A stretch of 64,000 nt of DNA from Lepidodermella squamata (Eukaryota; Animalia; Gastrotricha). The first letter of the stretch is position 1. Each line of letters starts with the position of its first letter. The stretch is taken from NCBI GenBank assembly GCA_047495785.1, contig JBLDXI010000009.1:2790001-2854000 (forward strand), in the 5' to 3' direction. The position numbers and the translations under genes are program-made. The notes beneath the pieces are model-generated. The model searched no databases and was not told the origin of the DNA. It worked only from the letters and a program-made list of their open reading frames with translations. Positions 14,059 to 64,000 of this stretch are shown here, in pieces.

Positions 14059-16040
14059 TCAAGCCATTTTGCCGCTGAATGGCCGGGCACCTTGGTTGGA
14101 AGGCCTTGCTGTCGGCGCATTTCTCACATTTACACTTGGTTGCTGATTGTGTTGGATGGCGAAAACCCCGCCGACGGCACTTTCGACTTCTCGCAAGAAG
14201 CCGGCTGCGTTTATTACGGTGGTTCCGCCGACTAGAACGCGGCCTGGTTGCGGGTTATTTGACAGCAACGCCGCGCATTCCGTGTAGGTCACACCGCCGA
14301 TGAAAAAAACTAGTAAATTTTGGTTCTGAGCCTCCATCTGCTCTTGGTGTTGAGCATTCGAAGGGTCTAACTCGCCTAGAGGTCGAAGACATTGACTGCC
14401 GAAAATTGAGGAAGGTCCGACATTCCATGCAGCACCACGCGCTCCAGGAGTTCCACTGGTCACCCCGGAACTGGTAATCAGATCGCGAACTTTAGGTTGA
14501 TGCAACGCGTATACGTTGTCAACGCCTCGAATTCCTTGCAAAATTCGACGAGGAACTTGCTGGATCGAAGCTACAGCGCTGTTACCAGAATTCATGTCTT
14601 TGGCGTAGTTGAAAACTAAGGCTCGGAGTAACCGGACACCTTTATCTAGCATCCAACCCCCTCTTCTCCGTAAAACGTCCTCAAGTTGCCCGAAATCGGC
14701 ATCAGTTGGGCGGTAAGCGATGGCGTATAACGCAGCTAAACGGAAGGCATCAATTGGCCGACAATCGGCACAAAATTTCTTCGCATTAGCTAGTGCCTCT
14801 TCATTCGAATAACGCTTTGACGCTAACATTTGTTGACATTCCGAAATTTCCATCAATTTCGACTTCTCAATTTGCTGCGATAGCTCAGAGACTAGAGTCA
14901 CGTGCCTGGTCACATTACCTTGAAGACGTCTGAAACCTGGGTAAGTGGCGACAAATGCGCGTAGATCGGCGAGGGATTCAACACTGGCTTGTTGTTTGTG
15001 CCTTTGCTGAAATTCGTCGACAAGGCGGCGAATGGTCGCGCCAATTTCGCCAAAATTCAGAAACATATTGCGTAGAAAGAATTCGTCATGAACAGGGCTC
15101 AGAACAATTGATTCCAATTCGCTGGGTTCTTTGTCTTTGATTTTATCTTTAGGATTACTCTCTACGTCTGTCTCGGCTAAACATACTCGATTGTGGTTTA
15201 AACCAACCAATTCGTGGGCCATTGCCACATATAACCAGGGGTTGACTAGAGGGGTGATACAATCTTGACGTCTATCAACGATCACAACAGTAATGCAAGA
15301 CGCAGCGCTCTGTGCAGAACGGGATATTCCAGAATTCCAATTTGAAGATCCTGGAGCTCCGCCAAAATCGAATAACTCACGCTCTCTGGTAACCAATTGA
15401 TTAAGGGACTCAGCTAAACGTCGAGATGGGCTTGATTCAGGACTAAATCGAATGGCAATCGGAAAACGTTTGATTGAAAGAAGGACGGCAGCCAACGAGC
15501 GGGCAGTTCTTGATAACAAATCCGTGGAAGCCCAATCGAAGCCAGGTGGCGATATGCAACCGGGTAAGTCGAAAGAGAAAATCGAAGGTGTAAGTGCTAA
15601 AAAGTCCGCGAAGAATTCTTGGAGGTCTCTGACTGCCTCTGACTCATCGGCGTCAGCCAAAGTTTTAACCAACTGCTTGGGAGCTGCATTACTCAAGTAA
15701 ACATAGTATTGCGCGTATCTTGGATGCCTTAACTCGTCAGCCAGCCTTGATATTGAATCATCAGATGGTCGAATAAAGACGACAGCTTTCAAATGTGGCC
15801 TATAAAAAGCATCTCAATATTAATTAGTTTGATCAAAACAAATAATACTTACATTGGATCACGGCCAGTGTTTTCCAGTACTTCAAATGCGTACACTTCT
15901 TTCTGTAGAAGCTCGGATTGCGCAACTGCAAGGCTGACAATGGGCATGGTGTCCCTATCAAGCAACAGTAACTTCATTCCAGGCCCGGCAGCCTCCATCA
16001 TCTTCCAAACGTAGCCTCGTACAGCTGCACAAATATCCAT
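14059..16040 (-). CDS. VPS45: Vacuolar protein sorting 45, Sec1/Munc18 family (2 exons)
   Basis: Exons 15853-16040 and 14059-15799. Motifs GPGMKLLLLD..QSELLQKEVY, HLKAVVFIRP, LADADESEAV, NFGEIG and FFIGGVTYTE. Confidence 0.93.
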
Positions 16041-25141: not shown

Positions 25142-26879
25142 TCAAAATCTCAAATCTTTATTGTTTACCGTTCGCTTTGCACCTATTATTAGTCATAATG
25201 TTTACAAAATTCAGAATGAGTACAAAGGTGGCAAAGGGAGGCTCGAGCGCAAAGAACAAGGCGTCCGGGACTGCATAAAATTAATTACAGCATGATGCAT
25301 ACAACTGTATACATACTTAGATACAGGAGGAATGGTACAAAGATTACATGTTCGGCAGGATAGGTAGGAACTCGAGAATATAATGGCGCACTTTGGTAGC
25401 AAAAATCAATGTAGAGTAAATACTGGTGATATTATTAGGTAGTGAATTCCACAAAGATGTCAGGCGCAAAATAAAGGAACAATGCCGTTGTTTGTAGTTC
25501 CACTGAGGAAAAATTAATTTATTGTTATGACTAGAACGAGTAGTAGAAGTGGACGGGGGATAAATAAATTCATTACGAAGCACAGAAATATGATTATGAA
25601 TGATTTTGTGGGCTATTTGAAGGTCCCTGAACAACCATCTCTGATGAAGTGATTGAATGTTAAATTTTTTCAGCCTTTCCAAGTAACATAAAGGAGCAAA
25701 GGGAGGAACTATCATTCGAGAAGTAACATTTTTGAGACACTTTTCCAAGAGGATTTTATCAGAAGCATTGGTGGGGTTCCAAACAGTTGAACAATAAAGG
25801 AATAAAGGTAAGACATAAGTATTAAAAGCACGCATTAGAACAGAATTATCTCGCGATACAAAGGAGTTCAAGATCAGACCGCACATGCGCCTGGCTTTTT
25901 CGTAGATATAATTACAATGAGAGGAAAATGATAATTTGCTGTCTACGATGACACCAAGGTCTTTAATTTCATATACTGATTCAATAGCGTGGTTCGACAC
26001 GGTATACGGAAAACACGGATTGTTTGAACCTAACCTTAAAACCACACATTTTTTCATGTTTACAGCTAGCTGATGGCTCAGAAAATAAGCTACGATGCAG
26101 TCAATATCAATCTGAACTTGAGAAGGAAGAGAATCAGGCTTCGGGTAAATCTTGACATCATCAGCATAGAGTTTAATTACACAGTGCTTGACAACAGAAG
26201 GCAAATCATTAATAAAAATTACAAATAACAGAGGACCCAGAACACTGCCCTGTGGAACACCGGATGACACATGTGACCAATCAGAAGAAGCGTTATTTAC
26301 ACAAACGCGCTGCTTACGAAGGATGAGAAAATTTTTAATCCAGTCTAGCAGTAATCCTTCAAAGCCATAATTACGTAATTTATCCAACAGTTTGATATGA
26401 GATACTGAGTCGAAAGCTTTTTTTAGATCAAAGTATATACAATCAGTATAATCTCCACGGTCAAGCGTCTTCGACCAGTCATTCACAGACTCCAATAGTT
26501 GTAGTTCAGTATTGCGAACAGGTAAAAAACCGAATTGCTCAGGAGATATTAGATTATTTTTCAGTAAAAATGATAGCATGTTGAATCTAACAACAGATTC
26601 CATTATTTTACATGGGACACTAGTTAGGCTGATAGGTCTATAATTCTCAGCGGAAGAAGAGGATCCAGACCCTTTATAAATAGGAATTACATTAGCAATC
26701 TTCCAAAGGGTAGGCAATTGAGATGTTTCAAAACTAGCAGAGAATATCAGAGAAAGTGGAACAGATAGAGCTTCTGACAAATTTCTAAGGATAGCTGGGT
26801 TGATACAATCTGGACCCATTGAGGTGTTGACATCAATTTTTCTTAGAAAAGATTCAATAATATTTTGAGGAAATTCTAC
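25142..26879 (-). mobile_element. 5'-truncated non-LTR retrotransposon (LINE, CR1/L2-group-like) with uninterrupted reverse transcriptase frame (ORF 25344-26819)
   Basis: RT motifs ENYRPISLTSVPCKIME, QFGF, YFDLKKAFDSVSH, SGVPQGSVLGPLLF, LYADD and KDLGV. No endonuclease domain. The 3' end is AATAAA plus GATTTGAGATTTTGA. Candidate 6-bp TSD ACGTTC at 25136-25141 and 26880-26885. Confidence 0.9.
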
Positions 26880-48400: not shown

Positions 48401-51400
48401 GACTCAATTAATGTATCCTGGACTGACCTGAGTATGTTTTGAATTTTCAGATTTTTTAAAAATATTTTTTACCCTTAAATATTTATTAATTTAGCATTTT
48501 ATTTCTTTTGCAGTGTGTCCCATAAGTTGAGTAAATTTATTATTTTTCAATGTTTTTGCTGACAAATTGCATATTTTTCCAAAATTGAATAATTTCCCAT
48601 CGTTTATCAACGATTTCTCATGGGCAATTAAAATTTTACCGAAGAAAATCCGAAAAACCCGAAATTCGGGAATTTTCGGTATTTTATCTGGTGAGACCGA
48701 TTTCCTCCGGATTTTTCATTCTCGTTAGTAATTTACGATATAAAATTTTTATGCATTGAGAATTCATCCGGACTCGTCGGAAATCGCCCATAAAATTCTG
48801 CTTTCTGATTTCGTTGAATTTTCTTTGATTGATTTATTCTCAGTTTTTTCGTCAGTTTTTTTTATGAATTTGTATATAAATTGAATTTGTATTTCAATTT
48901 CAAGCTGTCGACGTGCTTCGCGGTGCCGTGGATCGATTTGTGGTGGCGCTTCAGCACGAGAAAAAATCCTCCTACCTGCTACCCGAATCCGCTCATTTGT
49001 CCCTTCTCACCATCAAAGAAATACCCGGCAATCAACACAACATAATTTTCCGCGATCTCGTACCCTCAACCGCTTATACTGTCATGCTAACCATGCACAT
49101 GTACGGCGGAGCTTCAAAACGAGCCGCACCCATCCGAGTTGCGACATCGGACGGGACACCTAGTGGCTTGAAACCGCCTACAGTTCGAACAGTGTCCGAA
49201 TCCCAACTACGGCTATTCTGGTTCCCACCCGTCAACTCAAACGGCCAGGTTATACGGTACAACGTCTATGTTAACGACAAAAAGGTCAAAAGTCTGCCGA
49301 CATCAGCCGACGGCTCGCCGATGACCTCGTTCGCGAACGAGGGTGACTACAGCACTGTCGTCTCAGATCTCGAGCCGTACCAGGTTCACGCCATAATTTT
49401 AGAGGCTTGCACGAAATTCGCGTGTGGGAATTCATCGAAAACCCTGGCGACCACCGTCGAATCCGCACCTAAGGACATGTCACCGCCTCGAGTTGTCGCG
49501 CGGGGTTCAAGCTGGTTAACAGTCCGTTTCGGGCCCCCCGACTCGCCGAACGGAATTATTCTTAGGTACGATCTATACCGAAAATCAACAGACCATTGCC
49601 CGCATTACCGCGGATCGGGTCAGTTTGTGACTGAAAAACGGATTCAGAAAAGGTCGCTGGAAGACGCGATTTTGTTAGACTCGTTGGAGCAGTTGCCGGT
49701 TCTAGACACCCAGGCTCAGAAAAAACCGGCATCAGGCGGGTGTGATTACGTTAGCTGCCCGGTCGGTCACCGGCAATGCGGCGGGATTTGCTACGCCTCA
49801 AATAGCTCTTTAACCTGTTGCCGGGGCGAATTGTTCGAAACCAGGCTTAACCACGTCTGCTGCGATTCGAATTACGTACCAGTTCTAGACGGGCCCCTCA
49901 GTGAGAAGGTCTGCTGCGGAGGTAGGTTGCATAAAAAGGTACCAGGGCACGACTGCTGCTTCGGTAATTACGTCGACATCCCATCTGGCGCAACTTGCTG
50001 CTACAACAGCCTACAGCGCAATGTCATCGTTAGTCTCGGCGACAGTTGCTGCGCCAGTCTGCCGTACCGGCCTAACGAATTCGCGCAGGTTTGCTTCGGC
50101 GGCGTCCTCCTTAACCGGCCGGAACAAAAGGCGTGTGGCCGCCGCTTGATCCCGGCCTCGAAAGTTTGTTGCGCCTCTTCGCCGAATTTGAACGCGCAAA
50201 CCGAGAGTGCCGACCCGTTGCCGGACCACAGGTGCTGCGGCGGGAAGTACTACAACACATCTACGGCCAGGTGTTGCTCCACCGGCCGCCGGACCCGGTT
50301 ATTCCCGTTGGATACCGTGAAGCCTGGTATGGAAATGGCGTGTTGTGGCCTTCAGTTGATTCCGGCTGAGTTGTCCTGCTGCAACGGGAAGCCTTATAAT
50401 CGAAAAACTGCGCTATGTGCCGATACTGCCAACCCGACAAGTGATGAGACTACCACAGTTTTTCACAACTGCGGCCGGGGTACGATTTGCCCGATCGGCG
50501 CGTCAGCGATGTGTGACGCGTGTGATTTTCCGACCTCAGAACGCACTTGTTTGATCGAACAGCGGGAGAATCAAGTGTCGGCTGCTTTTGAGGCGGAGAT
50601 GACGAATAGTGGGGGATGGCCGCGGAATTGGAATAGCCCGTTGTTGGCTCCGATGGGTGAGTTGCATGGATCAATGGCGCTTAGCAGTTGGTGCCAGCCT
50701 CGCATTGTTCGCCTCTACTCGAACCAGACTGTTACTACGTTCAACGATACGGACCTGAAGCCTTACACGCGGTACGAGTATTTCGCACAGGTATGTCCTT
50801 AATTTGACGAAAATCCATTTTTTGAAAAAAAATTCGAATTTTGCTAATCATTTTTGAGGTTCAAAAAGCTCTATGAATGGCTATTTTATAGCAGCGTTGA
50901 TTTTTTGTGAGAAATTATTTTTTTAAATGAATTTTTAAAAATTAAAATTGAAAAATGGCGGGTTGGCGTGGTCGGTGTCCTGGCATTGCGGGTGCGAGAA
51001 GTAATTCTTAAACGCGAAGTAACCGAACCACAAGGCCCGCGCATTTCACGCTGGAGTTAGTCTGCTTTTAAGCGGCGTGATGAATCAATAATTGCGTGGT
51101 AAAATTGCGTGATGCAATTCAAGGTTATTGCTATGCAGGCTTCCAATTCTTCACCTCTGGACCACGTCCATTGGGAGACATTAAACATACATTCCTTACT
51201 AAAAATGGTTCATAATAACAATTTTCGTAGCTTTTCTAGAATAATTTCACTCCGTACAACATTTTTTCTTTCTGATTTTTAAATTACCTCGATATTTCAA
51301 AGAGGAGGCTGGTTCACTTTGAGCACCTACATCAAACTAAAAACCATGGTTTTAAAGTTGGATTTTAGGATTTCGCTATTGAATTGCAGAGGATTTTCTA

Positions 51401-54400
51401 ACAAAAAATAAAAAAATGAAAATGAAAAATGCGTGGGTTGGCGTGGCCGGTTTGTCCTGGCATTGGGAACCCTGTGCGTAGGTAAGTTTTGCGAAGTAGC
51501 CGAACCACAAGGCCCGCGCATTTGGGCAATGCGCCAGTCTACTTTTAAGCTGCGCAAAAATCAATTTCTATCGATCGATAAAATGAGCGCCGTAAATGGG
51601 TTGTAATTTCCCTGTATAACATTTGCCTATTTGGTAGGCTGTTATTCAAGTCCCCCGTTATCAGTTGATCAGCATAAGCAGAAAGCTAGTGCCGTTTTAT
51701 CAATTTTATAAACGCTTTATATGAGATAAGGGGCTGCTTCGCCATATCTGTTGAACGGAATCGAATTCAAGGTAGATTTTTGCATGAGAAGTATCGAAAT
51801 AAAAAATGAAAAAATAAAAAGGCATGAGATAGCGCGGCCGGTTTAGTGGTTCAAGCGGCGCATTCCCGGCTGGTCACCCGAAAGGACCTCCTCCGTGAGA
51901 GCAAATGAATTGGTTTGTGAAACGAAGTAACCGTGCCACTAGGCTCATGCCAAATGACCACCGCTCTAATTTCTATATATCATTATTTCAAAAAACGCGC
52001 TCGAAATTGTAATGTCGTGAAAATTTTTAATACTAATTTTTAATTGTGGCAGATTATTCAAGCTGCATACTTTAGCACTAATTTATTAGAAATAAAAAAT
52101 GAAAAAAAAAATAAAAAGCATGGGTTAGCGCGGCCGGTGTGATTTGGTTCAAGCGCGGCGATGATCTGCTGACGTTGCCGACAGGAAGATCCTCCCCTCG
52201 GTGAGTAGCTCTGTTAGAGAGTTTTGTGAAACGAAGTAGCCGTGCCACGAGGCCCATGCCGTTTGCTATGCTGCGTAAATCCTTTATATACCGCGCTTGC
52301 ACACAGCACAACTCAATGCTAGCATAATCAATGACACGCAGCATATGAATGCAAATGAAAAAATTGCTGACAAATGAAAAATGGGCTCTAGGATAAATAA
52401 ATTGTATTTTCTACCTGCCGTCTCAAATTTGAGATTGTGTTGAAAATTAAATTTTTTTTTTCAATTTTTCAATTGATTTCAATTGATTTTCGATTTAATT
52501 TATTTTAATCAATTTTTAATTTTAATTTTTAATTTTTAGGTCTCAAATTCCGTTGGAGCTGTCAATAGTACGATTTTAACTGCATCAACTACCGAAGCCC
52601 CTCCCTCAGGACTTCAACAACCCAGGATCGTATCAAACCCCGATCAACTGAACGTTCTCCGCATCAATTGGGACCCACCCTCGAAACCCAACGGCGCCCC
52701 GATTTTCTACAAATTATACCGAGACGGAATTTTGATTTTCTCCGGCGACACTCGCTCGTTTGTCGACACGACCGATGTCGCCCCCTTCCAGACCTACACC
52801 TACTGGCTGGTCGCGTGTAACCAGGTCGCTTGTGTGACAAGTAGCCGAGTCTCCGCCGCAACCCTAGAATCAGTCCCGGAGGGCTTCAACGCGCCCAAGG
52901 TCGCTAATGTCAATTCGACATGCGTCAATTTGACGTGGCTCCAGCCTGATAAACCAAACGGGTTGATTACGAAATACATTTTAACCCTCCGCGAGAAAAA
53001 TATTCAGCAAAAAGGCGGCTTGCCAATGCGGGACACCAGCGTCCACACAGCCGGGCCTAATGTCCGGTGGCTAATCGCCTGTAACTTGAAACCTTACTTC
53101 AACTACGAGGCGGGTATGGAGGCCTGCACCCAGGTCGGATGCCGCATGAGTGAATGGCAGGCGTTCACCACCGACGCAGCTTTACCGGTCGAAATCCCGG
53201 AACCGAGAGTTCTCGTCGTTAATTTCATGCATATCGACGTTATTTGGCGGCTCCCATTTTCGCCGAATGGGCCTATACTCGAGACGGTTTTATTCCGGAG
53301 ACGGGATGGAGAAATCTTGTTCTCAAAATTAGTCGCCTACGACACGTCAGTCACCCTAAATCCGGCTTCAAAAACGTTGAATTTTTCGGATTTTACCGTA
53401 AAACCTGGGTATAAATATGCTTACATGGTCCAGTACGCTAACCCGGCTGGGAAGGTTAATTCATCCGAGGTTTTATCGTACGGCGTCCCGTTGAAGTCGC
53501 CTGGTATACCAAGCCGGCCGCCTAGTGCGGTCAGCGTTCGAGGACCGAGGGCTATTACCGTGGTACTTCAACAGCCGATGAATTGTTCAATTGACCCGGT
53601 TTCGTTCGATGAGGTCATAGTGTTGATTGAAGCCGAATCTGGGGTTGAACGGTCGCATTTCAACGGTCCCGAGGCGAATTTTGACAACTTATCGCCTTAC
53701 ACTCTGTACGAAGCTCGGATTAAAACTTGTTTCAAGTGAGTTCAAAATTTATTTTTTCATACCGATATTAGTCTGGAATGATAGGTAATGAAAAATGAAA
53801 AAGTAAAAACACGGGTTTGCACGGCCGGTTTGTTAGGGATTTGAACTTTCAAAGCGACAATTTGATTCCAAATGTGTGAATTTCACGAAGTAACCGAACC
53901 ATAAGGCCCGTGCCTTTTCTATGCGCGCTTATATGCCTTATATATGCAGGCGATGCGTGATTCATGTGTGATGCAATATAGCGCAGTACTGATGTTTGCG
54001 CTCGATGAGTCATCATAATTTCTTTTTTTTTGGCAATGTCTAGAATGCGCCTTTTTGCACCATTTACACCTCAAATATATACTGGAATGAGAAAATTAAG
54101 TCATTCGGATTCTGGTTTCTCTTTTATTTAAAATTCAGAATATCTTTTATGGGAACCAATTTGCCAGTTGCGGAACCTAATTTTAGATGAGAAAAAAGTC
54201 GCTTTTCAAATATTCCTACGAAATTGAGGCAAAGTGTAAAGTTCGTAGTGAAGATTGCGCCTTATACAGAATTTTACGCTGAATTTGAAGATAACTTATT
54301 TTAAATTATGCTGACCAATCATGACACCCTTGAAATGTTCGAAAAAGGGTTTTAGGCCCAAAATTCCAAAGTCGTTCCGCTCAAAGTCAGACCCTCTAAC

Positions 54401-57400
54401 ATTTACTCATATATTTATCTCTGTAACCTCAATCACCCGTTTCCAGTCTCATTCATTATGAAATACTGGGCCGATAAGCCAAATTCCTCCAAATTCAGAA
54501 GGACGAGTTTGGAGTTAGACACCCGTGTTAAATTTTGGGCTCTAATCTTGGGTTTGAAATGAGACTAATCATTTCTCAATTTGATAGACTGTTATCGTCA
54601 AGCCTATCGTTATCAGTTGTTTAGCATATGCAGAAAGCTTGAGCCATTTTTTCAATTTTAGAAGCTGCTTATATGAGGTATTATCCTGAATCCATTGAAC
54701 AGATTCGAATTTCAGCTAGATATTTAGGTAAGAAGTATTGAAATAAAAAATGAAAAAATAAAAAGACATGAGTTGGCGCGGCCGGTTTAGTGGTTCAAGC
54801 GGCGTTTTCCCGGCTGGTCACCCGAAAGGACCTCCTCCGTGAGAATAACCAAGAATTGTTTTGTGAAAAGAAGTAACCGTGCCACTAGGCTCATGCCAAA
54901 TTACCACCTCTCTAATTTCTTTATATCATTATTTTATAAAAACACGCTCGCAATTCGAATTTTAACAAGCTAAGGTTCTTATATTTGCATGGCTTGTTTA
55001 TGGAGCTCGATTGATACAGCCTACAGTGGAGCTAGAAAGGAGAAAGTTGAACTAAACACGAACCCTTCTGGCAACCAGATGAATATATTCATGGTCTACG
55101 AGCTATTTTTAGAGCCCGTAAAAATACCCCATTTTACTCTATTTTGATGAAATGAAAAGAAACCTACTCGTTGGCGAAATCGGAACAAAAGCCAACCCGT
55201 GTGGTTCTTTTGGTTTTTCCTCTAATTAACCTCACGATTTGCGATTTTACGTTTTCTAATGAAACTGTCTGAGCAACTTCGCATTTTTCATTTCTCATCT
55301 TGTAATCGGCTTCGATGTAAATAACTCGCATCAAATTCAAATGAGGAAAGAAATCGAAGAAAAGAAAAAGTATTAGGTACCTATTCACGGAGCAAAGAAA
55401 AAATAAAAAATAAAAATAAAAAAAACATGGGTTTGCATGGCCGGTTTGAGTGATTATGAAATGTCAACAAGGTACGTTGGTTTCATGAAATGGTGCATTT
55501 GCGCGAAGTAACCTAACCACGTGGCCCATGCTGCAATCGCTCGCGCTATTGCGCTGAAATACATGCTTTGTCGATCGATTTTCCAATAACGCTCCAATAA
55601 TGTTCAATAAGTTTCTTTGAGTAAATGTTGTTTACGAAACGTAACGCATTTATTCCAACGTTTCGGTTATCACGACGTTTCATAAACAATGTTCAATAAG
55701 ATACCCCATTTTATTCTATTTTGATAGAAAGCTCTTACTCGGTGGCGAAATCGGAACAAAACCGTTTTACCTTCTGAGTTGAGGGACTTTTTATAACAAT
55801 GAAAAATAGGCACTAGGCACTCTAAAATAAAAGGCAGGGTCGAAAAAATAAGACACTTTTGTTTTATTTCGGGTAATATGCCTTTCATTTTCCGTGGTTT
55901 ATACGTGTTTTATTCGGCTCAGATCGTTTGGAATCACCGTTTCAAGAAATATCTTGATCATGAATTCATACTCTTCAAATTGTCCTACAATAAATTTTTA
56001 GAGCCCATAAAACTGCTTAATTTTACTGGATTGGAACTCACGAAAAATTGGAACAAGTGGAATAATTTCCCCCGTTCGGTTCTTTTGATTGGCGCTTTAT
56101 TCAAATTTATGATTTCACGAGTTCCAAAATGATTTATCTTGCGCGTCTTGTAATCTGTTTCTATGTCAATAACTCGCAATATAAAATTCTAATGGTAAAA
56201 ATTAATTTAAGAAGACTAAAAAAATTGAAATTAGAATTGATAAATGCATGCAGAAGATGCTGGGGTTCTATGTCAATTGAGCAAACGAAAATTGAGCAAC
56301 GAAAATAGAGCAAGGGCTTTTGAGCAACGATATTAGAGCAAACGAAATTAGAGCAAAACGACTTCTGAGCAAACGAAATTAGAGCAAAACGACTTTTGAG
56401 CAAAACGAGATTAGAGCAAAACGACACGAGAGCAAATTTAATAATTAATTGCAGCTGTTGTTTATTTTAAATAAAATTTGCTCTCGTGTCGTTTTGCTCT
56501 AATTTCGTTTGCTCAGAAGTCGTTTTGCTCTAATTTCGTTTGCTCTAATATCGTTGCTCAAAAGCCCTTGCTCTATTTTCGTTGCTCAATTTTCGTTTGC
56601 TCAATTGACATAGAACCGATGCTGGCTATCAGAAATAATACCACAATGTTCTAGGAATAAAAAATAAATAAAAAATAATAGAAATAGAAAATAAATAAAA
56701 AATAATAGGAATAAAAAATAAATAAATAAATAAAAATTAAAAACATGGGTTTGCATAGCCGGTTTGTGTTATGAAGATTCAACGTGAAGAGTTGGTTTCA
56801 AGCATTTGTGCGAAGTAACCTAGCCACATGGCCCATGCTACTTCCACTCTCGCTATAGCGCTTATATACACGTTAGGCCGATCGATTTTCCAATAACGCC
56901 CTAATAATGCTCTCATTTGAGGTTTTTTAATTATCTCCTCCTTAATTTTGCAGACCACCGGAGACCAGCTGCTCGTATAGCGAACCAGTTTTCGTCCGAA
57001 CAAAGCCAGCGCCGCCCGAGGGCCCACCTCTACCTACAGTTTTCGCTCAATCAGCCCGGTCTGTCGTCATCACATGGACACCCCCAGCCGAACCAAATGG
57101 CCCAATCGATCGGTACGAAATCTACCGGCGGCGAATCGGCGAGGAAATGTCGATGATCGCCTCGATTCCTGTCACGGTCGAGGCCTTTGAAGACGGCGAT
57201 AAGGACACGCAAAAAGTCGACACGTCATACATCGATAACGACGAAAAGCTTCAAGCGTTCACAACCTACGAGTACCGGGTAGCCGCTGTCACATCAGCAG
57301 GTCGCGGCTTTTCACCCTGGGCTGCGGTTCGAACCTCCCAGGCTAAGCCTTCGGTATTACGGCCGTTGATGGTCAACCAAACCGGACCGTACGGGGTCGA

Positions 57401-60400
57401 ATTTGTCTGGTCGCCGCCTGAGCATACAAACGGACCGTTGATTCACTATAAAATCGAATATCGCCGCCTTAATGCCGACCCTTCGTCCGATGTCGAAGTC
57501 CCAGCGCATACCTTCGTTGTATCGAGTAAACGGCAGTCTGTCCTGATTTCTGGGTTAAAACCGTTTTCGACATATTCCGCGCGTATTATTGCGGAAAATG
57601 CGGTTGGATCGGCTGAAAGTGACTGGATCACCTTTGCGACACCCGAGGCTGCTCCGACCGATTTGCCACCGGTCACGGTCGAGCAGTCACCCACCGGCTC
57701 GGCGGTCACGCTGCGCTGGGACGAGCCGCTGTCACCCAACGGGCGAATCACTCGTTACGCGTTGTATGATATGACGAAAAGTGAATCGTTACTTTGGACT
57801 GGGTCGGGTCGGGTGTTTGAATACCGGCGACTACGCCCGTTCACCACGTATTCGGTCATGTTAGAGGCGTGCACGAATGCGGGATGCTCGAAGACGCAGC
57901 CGCAGACATTCCGAACGGCTGAAGCTCCGCCGGACCTGCTTGACCCGCCTGTTGTCAAGAAGCTGAATGAGCGTAGTGTCCGGCTGAAATGGATGCCTCC
58001 GAAACTACCAAACGGCGAAGTCATCGAATACGAGGTGAGATCAATTTATTTAATACGTATTCTCTCTAATTATGAGAAAATTAAGTAATTCGTTCAATTT
58101 TTGGTACCGTAATGCGATTGCGGACATGGTAACTTTAGACTACTTAGGCTTCGCAGGTACCAAAGATAAATTCTCTGTCTCATCAGCTTTTTCACATAAA
58201 ACTCAAGGTGATTGGAGCTAAATTCAGTTTCAGAAAAACTACCAATAACTGGTCGTTTTGAGAGCGCCTTATTTTCACTTTATAAAGTGTGTTTCCAATG
58301 GAATTCGACATTTTGATTCTTGGCTTTCTCTCCCCGCTGAAATCAAAGAAAAACTAATAATCCGTCGTTGACGTTGTACGGGGTATCTACCCTTATATTG
58401 TAGTTGAAAAATCGGACAACTATATAAATACCCGGCTATATGAATATGCCGCTAAGAAAAAATTGATTTTTCTTGAATGAAAGATGTTGTGTGCAATGAG
58501 CGTCTAAAAATTTTCGCTAAAAGTTAGCCAACTGTTTAAATTGCCAAAAGCTGGATAAACATAGAAAAATTCTCCAAGAAAACCAGGAATTACCTTGCCC
58601 ACCTTTGGTTCAAATTTCAATAGGTTCAAATATGTTTATAGGCTGATTTTCCATCTTCCATTTGCTACAAGTTTCCCCTCGCTATTGTTTTGTTTAGAAT
58701 TTTTTTAGAATTGCTAAAATTTATGAGGGAATGTGAATAAAATTTGAAAAATGAAAAACACGAGTTGGCATGGCCGGTTTTTGAAAGCAGGAGGATTCTT
58801 GATCCCTCACAACTTTGCGCAAGTGCGAAGTAACCTAGCCACAAGGCCCGTGTCTCCCCTCTAACGCTAAAAATGCATTATAAATGGAACTACAAAAGCG
58901 TATTATTGATCCAATATCGACCGAATTTATCTTTCCACTTGTACCTGAACCCTAAAAATCGATTCCTCTGATATTTTAAATTGAAAAAAACCAGAAAAGA
59001 AAAAACTAAATTTCATAAATTTCAATGATTAATCATCTTAGAGGAATCTTAGAAATTCTGTGTGCAAAGGCAATGAGTCATCTACAGAGGATGATTCGTG
59101 TAGTTTCGTCATTTTAATCGATGGAAAACTACCGGGAGGATGAAAATTCGATAATGCGCGTTTCGACCGTCGATTGATAACACGAGCCGAACGGTTAAGT
59201 AGCTTGCATTGACATCATGAACGATGGTCTTGTATGGCTATGCGCTGCAAAACGGCCAGGCTGGTTCGTGTTTTTTATTTTTTTATTTTTTATTACTCGG
59301 CGTTTTTTCTTTTCCAAGTTTATAATACCCCTTTATCACTTGACTGAGGGTTATATTTTTTCATGTTGTGCGCTCTGTGTAATTAGTTGCTGATAAAGGC
59401 CGGTATAGTGTGCATATGCAAATTAACCAGCCGGTTGGTAGTACACACATCACAGATGGCGGTTGCGTGGATTTTACTACTCTAATTTTAAGATCATACT
59501 TCTTGGGATCATTACTTTATTAAGTTTTGCCCCAACGTCAGCCTCATCTGACGACAAACCCAAACCGCGATGACGAGACGTGGTGACTGGCCCTGAGCGC
59601 GAACTTGGCTTCACCTGGTCGGCTGCCTTCACCGGTAGCTGGCCTGGTCAGCCGTTGATGAACGTTCCGGGTTGGTGGCTCTTTAATTAGGGCCACTTCC
59701 GGAGGGGTCAGTCGCTTTCAGAGCGGCTTTTTAAAATAAAAAATGAAAAATTATTTTGAATAGTTCTACATAACTCACTGATGATGTCAACGAAAACATA
59801 ATCGTTAAAATTTGGCGGAACCAGTTAAAATGCTGATGGTTGCCGAAAACGTTAACATCGGGTTTTCTGGGTTTTTGGCTAATTTTCATTTCTTCGATGA
59901 AATCTTGATGAAAAATTATAGAAAAAAAAACTTATGTTGAGAAGGCTGGAATTTGACCTTGGATACTATTTCCATTCAAGTTGTTAATTTTTTTTATAAT
60001 TATAGCTTTTGCGGTTTGAACACCCGTTGGCTAAAGAATCAGATGGCGACATGATGGACGACCTTTTCATGGCTGATATGCGTCGAAAGGCTTTGAGATT
60101 CGCAACAACCACGACGACCAGCACCGTTCGAACCACTGTCGATTTGCCAAAGCAGCGCCGATCTGTAAAAACAGCTGAAGATACGAAAAAGCCCGCCGCT
60201 AAAATGACCTTGGTTCATTTGAACGACAGCGATGCGAAAGTAGTTTTCCGCGTAAAAGCTGACACTTTGGCTGAAAATGGCATGTTTTCATTCATCGACG
60301 ATGATTTGAAGCCATTCACGCGGTTCAAATACCGTTTACGTGCTCGAAACAGCCGTGGCCTGGTTGAAATTGACGGCTTAGATGACTTTGAGACACCCGA

Positions 60401-63400
60401 AGCCGTTCCTACTCGAATTAAACCGCCGCGAGTTTTGGCCGCCGATACAGATGAGCTGCGATTAAGGTGGTCGTTTCCGGTCGAAGCGAATGGTTTACTA
60501 CGATCGATGGCTATTCACAGGCAGCAGTACAACATGGACCATCAGGCTATTAAAGATTCGATCAAGAAAATTTTGATTAAAAGTAAGATTTTGGTTATTT
60601 TTAAGGCGGAATATTTTAAAACAGTTTTTTTTTATACATTTTGAGGTAAAAAAAGCTGTCTACTTCAGCTTATTAATAACTATGATTCATCACTCTTTAT
60701 CGCACACGTTTTTTGTGTAGATTTACCTCTATTTAATCATGCATAAATTCCGCGGGCCCAGTGGCTAGGTTACTTCGCATTCACAGGAAATCAAATCATC
60801 ACTTTGACATTTCACTCTCCAAACCGGCCGCGCAAACCCGCTTTTTTATTTTTATTATTATTTTTTATTTTCATTTTTCATCTATGATATACCTATCTAT
60901 GATATACCTATCTAAACAACCTCTTCTTCTTAAATTTTATTGGATACCATTTTAATCTTATTTTGAAAATTCCAAAGGCTATTTTCTCACAAAATCTTAG
61001 CATGAACCAAAAACAAAAAAGAAGCCCAAACTAGCTTGGGAAACAACAAAAACCAGAATTCTTTCAGTATACATGGCTCCTGAAAAAAATTAAAAGTAAA
61101 AAAAAAATTAAAAAAATTAAATAAAAACACTCACCGGAAGGCCGGTCAACCCGCGTCTCCTCATCTAGTCAACGCGAACCAACTTTGCCATCCGACTCGT
61201 GCCATTACTCAATGGCTTAAACGCGCATTAAGCTGTGTCGGTATTATCGAATTTCCACCGTCACACCTAGTTTTTATCGATCGATCGGGAAGAGAAAATT
61301 CATCGTAGCCGCATCGTGGCTCACATCGAAGTTTTCAACGGTGGGCTACGATGTTGCTACGATGTGTTGTAGCGCGTCGTAGCATTTTGAAAAATCGATA
61401 AGTGACTCAGTGATTGATTTTTTCAAACGTTGTGGATCATGAGGATAGGAATCTGTCGTCGGAATGTCCAGACAGACATGTAAGTCCACGTGTTACACGA
61501 TCCAGGTGATAAGGGAAATAATTTCAGATTCTAGCAGTCTAACTGTAGCATGAATTCAAGAGGGTGAAACGCGAACGGTAGCCTTCTGCTGAATGGATAT
61601 CAAAACACAGATTGCCGGTAGTTGAAGTACACAGAGCCGCACAGAGGACTCGAAACATGATGTTACCTTCCTGGAAGAGTCATTTCGAGAGTATGGGGGC
61701 TCTTCCATGTCAATTCAACCGACGACCAGCCCGTGTTTTCAAACCTGCACAACGGATAGAGCTTTGAAAACGAATGAAGCTTTAGTTTTTGTGATTTTTT
61801 CCTCCGACGCAATGGCGAGGTTAAAAAATTCAAACCTGAAACCCACGCCAAATCTTAGAAACGGTAGTCAAGGAGCTTGTTCTCGCTAACTGTAGCGTTT
61901 CCCGGCGAAAATTTGTTACTGAAGTTACATCTCAATGGTCCCAGTATGCACACATAGTCTCGGCCTGGAATCGTCAATTTTCGCATTTTTTTTAATTCGG
62001 AACCCCCCAAAAGTAGGTATTTTCGGAAGGTCAAACATTCATTCTACTCAATTTTTTCTCCAAATGTTTTGCACCATCGTATTCAGCGTAACAAGTTGTA
62101 ACATGCAACATATGTCGGAATCACGGTGGTTTTCTTCCGTTTCTTGGAATGGAAACGTTCCTCGCCTGATGGAGTGTCCCATCGATTCCATGTTTGGTAC
62201 AAATGCGGCCCCCGGGATAGGCTTTCTAGCAAAACAAACCTCGTCCCACTCGGATTCTCCATCGGTTAGCCCTGGGTTGAAAATAATAGTTTTGGCTGAT
62301 TTTATCAGTTTTTCGAGCCAACTTGGCGCCGAACTCTTATCGCCCGCGTTTCTGTATAATTACTTCCATTTAATCATGCCTATATTGAGCTGGCCCAGTG
62401 GCTAGGTTACTTCGCATTCACACTGAAATTAAATCTTCATTTTGACACAAAAGAAGTCCAAACCACTTTGGGAAATAACAAAAACCAGAATTCTTTCAGT
62501 ATACATGGCTCCTAGAAAAGGAATTAAAAGTAAAAAAAAATTTAAAAAAAAATAAAATAAAAACACTCACCGGGATGCCGGTCAACCCGCACCTCCTCGT
62601 TCCGACTCAATGCGGACCAACATTGCCATCCGGCTCGTGCCATTACTCTATGCCTTAAACGCGCATTAAGCTGTGTCGGTATTATCGAATTTCCACCGTC
62701 ACACGTAGTTTTTTTCGATCGATCGCGAAGGTGAAAACCTATGAATAATTCAGTCATTTTATTTACTGTCCTTCACAGGTTGCCTCTTGGGTAACGAAAA
62801 AATAGAAAATTAAGAGAAAATAAGGACCGAGGCAAAAATCCAAAGAAATCTATTCAAAATACCGATAATTACCGAACCATTTCAATCGGTTTTATCCGGT
62901 TTTATTCTGAAAAATTGAAAATTGGTTTCTGAGGAGCCTTAAATTAAAGTTTGCTAACTTATGAAAATTAAAATTTTCCAAGCAAATTTTCACATTTTTA
63001 AAATAAATTGTCTGTCATTTTTTTTCAGATTTTCACACGCATGATTTTGTCGATTCCGATGTGAAGCCCGATACCGAGTACGCATACGCCATTGAAGCTT
63101 GCACCACAGTCGGCTGCAACATGAGCAGGTGGCGCCATGTAAAGACCCTCGCCCCGCCCCCGGACATGTACTCAGCCCCCTCTGTTTCTAACGTCAACTC
63201 AACCTCAGCAACAATCCACTGGGTTAAACCAGTTTCGAACCGGGCTACAACCTCTCTGGGCAGTGGGCATTTCCTGAGAAGCGCGGCGACGGGTGACGTG
63301 ATCGGTTATCGCATCGCTGTGAATGGGACGGAATATCCGAAATTAATACCGGCCGAAGAGACATTTTACGTACTGAACGAACTAAGACCGTTCCATTTCT

Positions 63401-64000
63401 ACTCAGTCGCTATAGCGGCTTGCGTGAATAAACCGTCATGGGACTCGAACCGCGACGACCCGGACGAAGATCTCGAGCAATTTTTCAAGGAAAATTTCGA
63501 CCAATCCGGCAATCACACTGTTGTTCTATCGAAAGTTCAAGAAATCGTCTCGAGTCGAAGCGGGGCTCTATGCGGGGCCTACTCCCGGCCGGCTACTATT
63601 CAAACGGAAGAGGCCCTACCGAAAAATCTAGCCCCGCCCAGGCCTGTTGCGATCAGTTCGTCCGCGATTGATATTCAATGGCGGGAGCCTGAGGAAACGA
63701 ACGGTTTCATCCTAGAGTACGTTCTCTACCGGAATAACTCGGCGATTTCCTACTGCGATTCCTGCTTCAGTTACATCGATTACGATTTGGAGCCTGCTAC
63801 GGCGTATTCTTACCATCTAACCGCGAGAAATAGCATTGGAACAATTACATCGAGTGAGGCGAATGTGACTACGTTTTTCTCATCGCCGGACGGAATGCCG
63901 CCGCCTAAGGTTAAATCGCTAAGCCCCACCACGGTTCTGGCTACGTGGGAGAAGCCGGTAAAACCGAATGGGGATATCAAAAATTACACGATTTACCTAA
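36416..64000 (+). CDS. USH2A: Usherin orthologue (LamG-like, laminin N-terminal, laminin-EGF array, FN3 repeats, two LamG, Cys-rich region, more FN3); runs beyond window end
   Basis: N-terminus (GSFPNLFNVA..STC..FFCRS..FCDASCPTRSS) and domain order match usherin. About 18 exons in the window, including 38493-39254, 41156-43151, 43686-45659, 46191-48432, 48905-50790, 52541-53736, 56954-58034, 60006-60582 and 63029-64000. Confidence 0.93.
40801..41010 (+). repeat. Diverged dispersed intronic repeat (related copies at ~48516-48722 +, ~62835-62965 -, partial ~59850-59936 -)
   Basis: Shared TGTCCCATAAGT... and ...GG(T/G)AATTTTCGGTATT..GATTTTT(T)CATTC blocks seen by eye. Confidence 0.6.
50951..51042 (-). 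ncRNA. Vault-RNA-like Pol III small RNA, copy 1
   Basis: Minus strand GCGCGGGCCTTGTGGTTCGGTTACTTCG..variable..ACACCGACCACGCCAACCCGCCA TTTTT; CTTAAAAG near -30. Confidence 0.7.
51425..51519 (-). ncRNA. Vault-RNA-like Pol III small RNA, copy 2
   Basis: GCGCGGGCCTTGTGGTTCGGCTACTTCG..CAAACCGGCCACGCCAACCCACGCA TTTTT; CTTAAAAG near -30. Confidence 0.72.
51816..51951 (-). ncRNA. Vault-RNA-like Pol III small RNA, copy 3
   Basis: GGCATGAGCCTAGTGGCACGGTTACTTCG..TAAACCGGCCGCGCTATCTCATGCC TTTTT; ATATATAG near -30. Confidence 0.75.
52113..52260 (-). ncRNA. Vault-RNA-like Pol III small RNA, copy 4 (longest)
   Basis: GGCATGGGCCTCGTGGCACGGCTACTTCG..ACACCGGCCGCGCTAACCCATGC TTTTT; TATATAAAG near -30. Confidence 0.75.
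53805..53914 (-). ncRNA. Vault-RNA-like Pol III small RNA, copy 5
   Basis: GGCACGGGCCTTATGGTTCGGTTACTTCG..CAAACCGGCCGTGCAAACCCGTG TTTTT; TATATAAG near -30. Confidence 0.75.
54760..54897 (-). ncRNA. Vault-RNA-like Pol III small RNA, copy 6 (paralogue of copy 3; internal T4, possibly defective)
   Basis: GGCATGAGCCTAGTGGCACGGTTACTTCTTTTCAC..TAAACCGGCCGCGCCAACTCATGTC TTTTT; TATAAAG near -30. Confidence 0.65.
55421..55531 (-). ncRNA. Vault-RNA-like Pol III small RNA, copy 7
   Basis: GCATGGGCCACGTGGTTAGGTTACTTCG..CAAACCGGCCATGCAAACCCATG TTTTTTTT. Confidence 0.72.
56264..56617. mobile_element. Foldback-type MITE (long TIRs built of ~14-15-bp GAGCAAA(A)CGA subrepeats), 8-bp TSD
   Basis: Ends GGTTCTATGTCAATTGAGC / GCTCAATTGACATAGAACC. 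Near-perfect arms of ~145-175 bp around a short AT spacer. TSD GATGCTGG at 56256-56263 and 56618-56625. Confidence 0.92.
56739..56838 (-). ncRNA. Vault-RNA-like Pol III small RNA, copy 8
   Basis: GCATGGGCCATGTGGCTAGGTTACTTCG..CAAACCGGCTATGCAAACCCATG TTTTT; TATATAAG near -30. Confidence 0.75.
58754..58854 (-). ncRNA. Vault-RNA-like Pol III small RNA, copy 9
   Basis: GACACGGGCCTTGTGGCTAGGTTACTTCG..AAAACCGGCCATGCCAACTCGTG TTTTT; TTTATAA near -30. Confidence 0.73.
59180..59276 (+). ncRNA. Divergent member of the same small-RNA family, copy 10
   Basis: ACACGAGCCGAACGGTTAAGTAGCTTGCA..TGCAAAACGGCCAGGCTGGTTCGTG TTTTTT. Same spacing and closing stem as the other copies; core motif altered. Confidence 0.6.
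59490..59727 (+). ncRNA. U3: U3 small nucleolar RNA
   Basis: All U3 boxes in order: A'/A AAGATCATACTT..GGGATCAT, C' GATGACGAG, B CTGAGCGCGAA, C TTGATGA(ACG) and D (variant CAGA) + GCGG. Stems CCGC/GCGG and TGACTGGCCCT/AGGGGTCAGTCG. Length about 238 nt. Confidence 0.88.
60750..60847 (+). ncRNA. Vault-RNA-like Pol III small RNA, copy 11
   Basis: GCGGGCCCAGTGGCTAGGTTACTTCG..CCAAACCGGCCGCGCAAACCCGC TTTTTT; upstream TATA less clear. Confidence 0.72.
61123..61203 (-). ncRNA. Divergent short member of the same family, copy 12
   Basis: GGCACGAGTCGGATGGCAAAGTTGGTTCGCGT..ACGCGGGTTGACCGGCCTTCCGGTGAGTG TTTTT. Confidence 0.55.
62387..62447 (+). pseudogene. 3'-truncated copy 13 of the small-RNA family (paralogue of copy 11)
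   Basis: GGCCCAGTGGCTAGGTTACTTCGCATTCAC is retained with a copy-11-like upstream flank. The 3' arm and terminator are deleted. Confidence 0.7.
62559..62641 (-). ncRNA. Divergent short member of the same family, copy 14 (paralogue of copy 12)
   Basis: GGCACGAGCCGGATGGCAATGTTGGTCCGCAT..GTGCGGGTTGACCGGCATCCCGGTGAGTG TTTTT. Confidence 0.55.

Follow-up and report, generated by a model that had tools for sequence, protein, structure and literature searches.

The human VTRNA1 gene has a promoter layout in which A and B boxes are combined with an upstream TATA element, and the function of vault RNA is still unresolved (PMC13404743). Sequences of vault RNAs are available from vertebrates, from a sea urchin and from Trypanosoma brucei (PMC10491885), the last of which is the exception to a general scarcity of sequences outside the deuterostomes (PMC2655684, PMC10491885). 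Beyond the deuterostomes, vault RNAs have been described as largely unknown (PMC2655684), and a survey of a tunicate genome could not find them (PMC5006418). The subject of this report is a group of 14 related small RNA units at positions 50952-62641 of a 64,000-nucleotide (nt) stretch of the genome of the gastrotrich Lepidodermella squamata (positions 2,790,001 to 2,854,000 of contig JBLDXI010000009.1), which is referred to here as the window. The units lie within introns of an usherin-like gene, and it is probable that they represent a lineage-specific expansion of divergent vault RNA genes inside those introns. An expanded and diversified vault RNA locus was the first of two alternatives offered in a preliminary description of this DNA, and it finds support in the alignment of units to the Rfam Vault model, in paralogues that reach the threshold of that model, in the presence of genes for MVP and TEP1, and in the family's small number of copies.

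The units and their panhandle

The core motif GGTTACTTCG, with up to one mismatch allowed, occurs 14 times in the window (11 of these within 51015-62414) for a chance expectation of 3.4, and this number was reached in none of 100 shuffles. With both strands read, and with each unit taken to start 18 nt before the motif and to end at the first T run, the cluster consists of ten intact canonical units, one copy truncated by a deletion and three divergent units. The preliminary description had counted 14 units, 11 antisense and three sense to the host gene, and had given a consensus that ends in a T run. Reading both strands reproduces the count and the orientations, the consensus is correct, and a run of at least four T residues closes every complete unit. 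The ten complete units span 91-146 nt; nine of them are read from the minus strand, the tenth from the plus strand.

The canonical units were scored with the Rfam Vault model (RF00006) and with R1, a covariance model built here from 13 copies of the family. The unit at 50952-51042 (minus strand, 91 nt) scores 25.3 bits over the full Vault model and 74.1 bits with R1, and has the TATA-like element CTTAAAAG at -30. Its paralogue at 51426-51519 (minus strand, 94 nt) is 81-93% identical to it in the arms and 51% identical in the centre. Two long forms follow on the same strand, one at 51817-51950 (134 nt; Vault 29.7 bits, model positions 1-99), in which the best A-box match is GAGCCTAGTGG, and one at 52114-52259 (146 nt; Vault 24.0 bits), which has TATATAAAGG at -29. 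The unit at 53806-53913 (minus strand, 108 nt) scores 29.8 bits with Vault and 98.9 bits with R1. Another long form, at 54761-54896 (minus strand, 136 nt; Vault 24.5 bits), is a segmental duplicate of the 51817 unit and is located in another intron. Further minus-strand units lie at 55422-55531 (110 nt; R1 98.3 bits), at 56740-56838 (99 nt; R1 90.2 bits), with TATATAAG at -30, and at 58755-58853 (99 nt; R1 77.1 bits). The intact unit at 60750-60845 (96 nt; R1 85.9 bits) is on the plus strand, which is that of the host gene.

Four units depart from this pattern. The truncated copy at 62387-62465 (plus strand), a pseudogene, matches R1 at model positions 17-93 only, with 19.1 bits, and retains the 5' arm and the centre. 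A deletion took away its 3' arm and terminator, the copy of a duplicated segment that holds this unit (60692-61298 versus 62333-62737) being short of about 200 bp. The divergent family member at 59180-59275 (plus strand), recognized by its R1 score (15.9 bits, expectation value (E) 0.004) and its fold, has kept the closing panhandle and the T run and has lost the GGTTACTTCG motif. The remaining two are a highly divergent hairpin RNA gene at about 61123-61203 (minus strand), which has its own fold and is possibly derived from the family, and its twin at about 62559-62641 (minus strand), inside the duplicated segment. This pair, whose folds differ by one compensatory change, accounts for both copies in the whole genome. 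Of the 14 units that had been described as related, these twins have diverged so far that neither obtains a score with R1 or with Rfam, and no model score ties either to the family. A motif that lies upstream of all three divergent units (GAAATTCGATAAT ... AATGCGCGTTT, at 59100-59180, 61204-61290 and 62642-62730) is absent from the canonical units, which suggests that this subfamily has its own type of promoter.

Groups of units are separated by plus-strand open reading frames (ORFs) that code for FN3 domains, at 48913-50802, 52732-53739, about 56950-58035 and 60009-60585. Exon ORFs and domain matches mark these as FN3-array exons of the host gene (48913-60585, plus strand). ORFs further upstream encode laminin-EGF, FN3, laminin-G and further FN3 domains, and the host is considered an usherin-like gene because this domain order matches that of usherin. 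The units lie in the introns after each of the four FN3 exon ORFs, in agreement with their earlier placement in four usherin introns. In the exon at 48913-50802 (plus strand), a cysteine-rich stretch matching galaxin-like repeats (Pfam PF24748) lies between FN3 domains.

All ten intact units, when folded singly, give one panhandle, and the RNAalifold consensus agrees with it. Nucleotides 1-7 pair with the 7 nt that precede the U tail to form helix 1, which is separated by a small internal loop from helix 2. The latter has about ten pairs, among them those of GGUU in GGUUACUUCG with AACC in the 3' arm. What lies inside the helices is a variable centre, 40-95 nt long. With at most one mismatch, GGUUACUUCG is present near the 5' end of 10/10 intact units and of the truncated copy, and the 5' arm of each intact unit contains GGYTACTTCG. 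The pairing of the 5' and 3' arms that was claimed earlier is thus borne out in the form of two helices, backed by the folds and by covariation. The element CAAACC, which had been read as the 3' half of a B box, is actually the 3' strand of helix 2, where it pairs with GGUU.

Selection on this structure was assessed in a MAFFT alignment of 18 copies that was not fitted to any structure. In this alignment 93.4% of cells pair, compared with 31-47% when the partners are slid by one to three columns; changes on both sides are seen at eight of 17 pairs, and the observed covariation score was reached in none of 500 shuffles. When eight sequences of a second organism are added, 13 of 16 pairs are compensatory, in an alignment that was fitted to the model and is hence biased towards structure. 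Duplicated segments provide a further comparison. The duplication of 51617-52008 and 54566-54955 is 83% identical overall, and within it the 51817/54761 unit is 91% identical and the 58-bp promoter 88% identical, whereas the downstream flank is only 74% identical. In two older duplicate pairs identity is 81-93% in the arms and 51-58% in the centres. Judging from these identities, constraint acts on the arms and promoter, and the centre can vary freely.

Relation to vault RNA

When matches are taken by E-value, five of the units align full-length (model 1-99) to the Rfam Vault model, with scores of 24.0-29.8 bits, and in these alignments both closing helices, the GGUUAC sequence and the B-box region are in register. 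In the comparison with Rfam by Infernal that the preliminary description had proposed, Vault aligns to five units, all of which score below its threshold, and Y RNA gives no match at E up to 10. At gathering thresholds the only Rfam match in the window is a U3 small nucleolar RNA (snoRNA), so that default annotation thresholds would miss the whole cluster.

The family was followed through the whole genome (121 Mb in 151 contigs). A strict pattern gave 15 matches, of which 12 are genuine copies. The search with a covariance model, which had also been proposed, was done with R1 and found 18 copies, ten in the window and eight outside it; of the latter, three form a cluster on C54, three are on C1, and single copies lie 37 kb downstream and 12 kb upstream. 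The family total is about 18-21 copies, that is, 18 by the model and three divergent ones. Two unlinked paralogues, C1:3090126 and C9:2889845, score 34.1 and 34.0 bits with Vault, for which the gathering score is 34, with E values of about 5e-4 for the whole genome, and both have canonical B boxes. Their R1 scores of 85-86 bits arise by construction, since both are among the 13 sequences of that model. These paralogues are tied to the units of the window because the arms are shared in MAFFT alignments.

Related units also occur in other DNA. The 5' motif, when searched for in metagenome contigs, has 16 matches, and 14 of these match the model weakly or not at all and look like chance occurrences. 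Two contigs of eukaryotic origin, L064 (JAAUXV010144917.1) and L070 (JAAUYJ010084009.1), hold four to five model matches each, of 126-201 nt, and most of these units have canonical B boxes, T runs and the arms of the family. One L070 unit scores 37.4 bits with Rfam Vault, which is over the gathering score. Since L064 and L070 hold such sets, clustered and diversified vault-like genes are not unique to this genome.

The preliminary description had also suggested looking for MVP and TEP1, and both genes are present. MVP is represented by intact ORFs over the N-terminus, the vault repeats, the shoulder and the cap helix. One TROVE locus was found in the genome, and it continues into an ORF of 1627 amino acids with DUF4062, a NACHT-like NTPase and TEP1-type propellers. 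The best named homologues of this locus are telomerase protein component 1, at 27-31% identity, and the TEP1 homologues are from amphioxus, echinoderms, a priapulid, an annelid and molluscs. TEP1 is 31% identical to its best annotated orthologue and 47% identical to a metagenome relative. No Ro60-type TROVE gene was found in the genome, the sole TROVE locus being TEP1, and a Y RNA identity is disfavoured because of this. The Rfam models for Y RNA and stem-bulge RNA gave no match in the window at E up to 10, and Y RNA was rejected because neither a match nor a Ro60 partner was found.

Promoters, competing explanations and neighbouring features

A TATA-like element is present at -32 to -29 in 15 of 18 family members, and the A+T fraction is 0.92 at -30 to -26 versus about 0.6 nearby. 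In ten of the 11 canonical copies the TATA at -30 and the terminator are retained, as are both helices, in which changes are compensatory. An A-box match of 6-8 out of 9 is located at position 5 of the units. In a scan for the B box (GGTTCGANTCC), four unlinked paralogues match at 9-10 out of 10 positions, and the promoter layout of VTRNA1 (PMC13404743) matches these unlinked copies. Among the copies whose B box is intact are C1:3090126, C1:3128447 and C9:2889845. The only unit in the window above the shuffled level is the one at 53806-53913 (minus strand), with the near-canonical B box AGTTCAAATCC (8 out of 10). The true B-box site lies upstream of the 3' arm and is decayed in most copies of the cluster; a residual TTCA-containing stretch at the homologous place suggests that the B box decayed there rather than being absent originally.

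The genome has 32 U6 genes, in which ATATGCAAAT is located some 70 nt and GTATTTAAGG some 30 nt upstream, and the position of the TATA is the only promoter feature common to the vault-like units and these genes. Octamer-like sequences occur in some vault-like units at variable distances. The promoter of the units can be inferred to be a hybrid in which an upstream TATA is combined with an A box inside the gene, whether or not a B box is present, rather than a strict type-3 promoter, and transcription of the cluster copies would probably depend mainly on the upstream TATA. The first terminator of nearly all members is followed by T-rich tracts (TTTTTATTTTTTCATTTTTTATTT or variants of it), for example at 51790-51816 and 52090-52113. 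These tracts also follow units at the unlinked C1 and C54 loci and are absent after the U6 genes, and the repeated tracts may be back-up terminators.

Several points weigh against identifying the units as vault RNA genes. None of the units in the window reaches the Vault gathering score of 34, the other five intact units have no Vault match at E up to 10, and the Vault score comes partly from A- and B-box-like promoter sequence that is common to many RNA polymerase III (Pol III) genes. Nine of the ten intact units in the window have B-box matches of 5-6 out of 10 where the shuffled mean is 5.7, and these nine units may be transcribed weakly or not at all. The vault-like units do not have ATATGCAAAT at a fixed position, so a pure type-3 promoter is not supported. 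Covariation among the paralogues of one genome can, moreover, partly mirror shared descent.

The units could instead belong to a new class of Pol III small RNA in which a vault-like panhandle and promoter-derived sequence are found in RNAs that are neither homologous to vault RNA nor bound to the vault. Such a class would agree with the scores of the window units under the Rfam threshold, with the location of much of the shared sequence within the A-box region, and with the lack of a B box in most units. It is nevertheless unlikely, as paralogues that share the arms reach the Vault threshold with all helices aligned and a unit of the second organism scores 37.4 bits. In addition, the 10-nt GGUUACUUCG is longer than a generic A box, and TEP1 is the sole TROVE locus found, with no Ro60.

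Alternatively, the cluster could consist mostly of silent and decaying duplicates, with the working vault RNA genes being the few unlinked copies in which the B box is intact. This possibility, which is given slightly less weight still, would fit with the decay of the B box in nine of the ten intact units of the window, with the truncation of one copy and the strong divergence of three, and with Rfam scores of the window units that are below those of the unlinked copies. It is harder to reconcile with the TATA at -30, the compensated helices and the terminator in ten of 11 canonical copies, and with the duplicate pair of 83% identity in which the flank is less well conserved than unit and promoter.

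A family of tRNA-derived short interspersed elements (SINEs) or miniature inverted-repeat transposable elements (MITEs) that accumulated by chance in these introns would share the A-box-like 5' region, the short length and the intronic position, but is very improbable in view of about 18-21 copies in 121 Mb rather than the hundreds to thousands of dispersed copies that the preliminary description associated with such elements, of a sense strand that ends in T runs with no poly-A tail (features that, with the copy number, led to its rejection), of a TATA at a fixed distance from each copy, of a structure kept by compensatory changes, and of the lack of a tRNA-like fold by ARAGORN. A tRNA gene or pseudogene was rejected as well, since ARAGORN detects no cloverleaf around the units and reports 0 tRNA genes in 50000-56678 and 56715-64000.

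If the units are divergent vault RNA genes, the family would have expanded by local and segmental duplication inside the usherin-like introns, and each unit, to judge from its sequence, would be an independent Pol III gene. The TATA-like element about 30 nt upstream would set the start, the A-box-like 5' region would be internal, and the T run would end the transcript. The canonical B box, still present in four unlinked paralogues, would have been lost from most copies of the cluster. If vertebrate vault RNA is a guide, the TROVE domain of TEP1 would hold the conserved arms at the vault particle, and the variable centres might have paralogue-specific activities outside it. The analysis shows the anatomy of the genes, selection on their structure, the small number of copies, the similarity to the Vault model and the presence of MVP and TEP1 genes; transcription by Pol III, expression, binding to TEP1 or to the vault, and any function are predictions.

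It is possible, though this is put forward tentatively, that these genes are the first documented vault RNA family outside the deuterostomes and kinetoplastids, with about 20 paralogues of diversified centres and a subfamily that shifted from a B-box promoter to an upstream-TATA promoter. If this is true, it would suggest that vault RNAs serve here as a group of specialised riboregulators and not as a single structural RNA. The roughly 20 paralogues represent natural variation, with constrained arms and free centres and with intact and decayed B boxes, that shows which parts of the RNA are selected. Covariance models seeded with these diverse copies could also detect vault RNAs in other invertebrates.

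Other features were observed in the window and elsewhere in the genome. A U3 snoRNA gene at 59490-59727 (plus strand; 102.7 bits with the Rfam U3 model, for which the gathering score is 34) shares its intron with two of the units and is a neighbour rather than a member of the family. It has ATATGCAAAT at 59414-59423, about 70 nt upstream as in the U6 genes, and no TATA at -30. The sequence at 56264-56617 is a near-perfect palindrome of 354 bp, with arms that are 88% identical and built from short tandem subrepeats; it gave spurious sub-threshold Rfam matches to microRNA and small RNA models and may be a MITE-like or foldback element. An ORF at 25344-26819 (minus strand) has a reverse-transcriptase domain (RVT_1) and is presumably a retroelement. 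A single-ORF VPS45 gene (Sec1 family) at 14059-15792 (minus strand) encodes a protein that is 37% identical to its best annotated orthologue and 67% identical to a metagenome protein. As judged from its sequences, the genome is that of an animal of a fast-evolving lineage, with very divergent proteins and without an annotated close relative. Searches of the genome for the Taeniidae antigen family and for the GH6 domain of tunicate cellulose synthase gave negative results, which speak only weakly against a taeniid or a tunicate. In a ribosomal DNA unit at C2:2908301-2911419, which also holds 28S sequence, two spliced-leader-like genes lie next to a 5S gene. Each of the two has a short exon followed by a GT donor and is preceded by a common CCAATGACCAYGTGCATGTGG element, and one of the exons resembles the 3' half of the Oikopleura dioica leader.

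Comparison with described systems

The U6 genes of this genome, 32 copies of a type-3 Pol III gene, resemble the vault-like units in having a TATA-like element about 30 nt upstream and a T-run terminator. They differ from the units in that they have ATATGCAAAT fixed at about 70 nt upstream and are not followed by T-rich tracts.

Y RNAs and nematode stem-bulge RNAs resemble the units described here in that they are small RNAs made by Pol III, their ends pair, and they have a U tail and a loop that varies. These RNAs bind a TROVE-domain protein, and in some lineages their genes are clustered and present in multiple copies. The conserved motifs of the present units, however, are those of the Vault model, and no Ro60-type gene was found.

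The closest counterpart is vertebrate vault RNA (RF00006, VTRNA1). The present family differs from it in having about 18-21 paralogues rather than one to four, in the decay of the B box in most copies of the cluster, and in window copies that score under the Rfam gathering score. It also differs in its setting, as the units lie mostly antisense in the introns of an usherin-like gene, not beside the protocadherin cluster, and the host is a fast-evolving invertebrate. The likenesses extend over the RNA, its promoter and its presumed partners. They include a length of 90-150 nt, a panhandle of two closing helices with an internal loop, GGUUACUUCG in the A-box region, a variable centre and an oligo-U end. 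They further include an upstream TATA, a B box that precedes the 3' arm in those paralogues that are best preserved, an arrangement of the genes in small local clusters, and the presence of both MVP and TEP1 genes in the genome.

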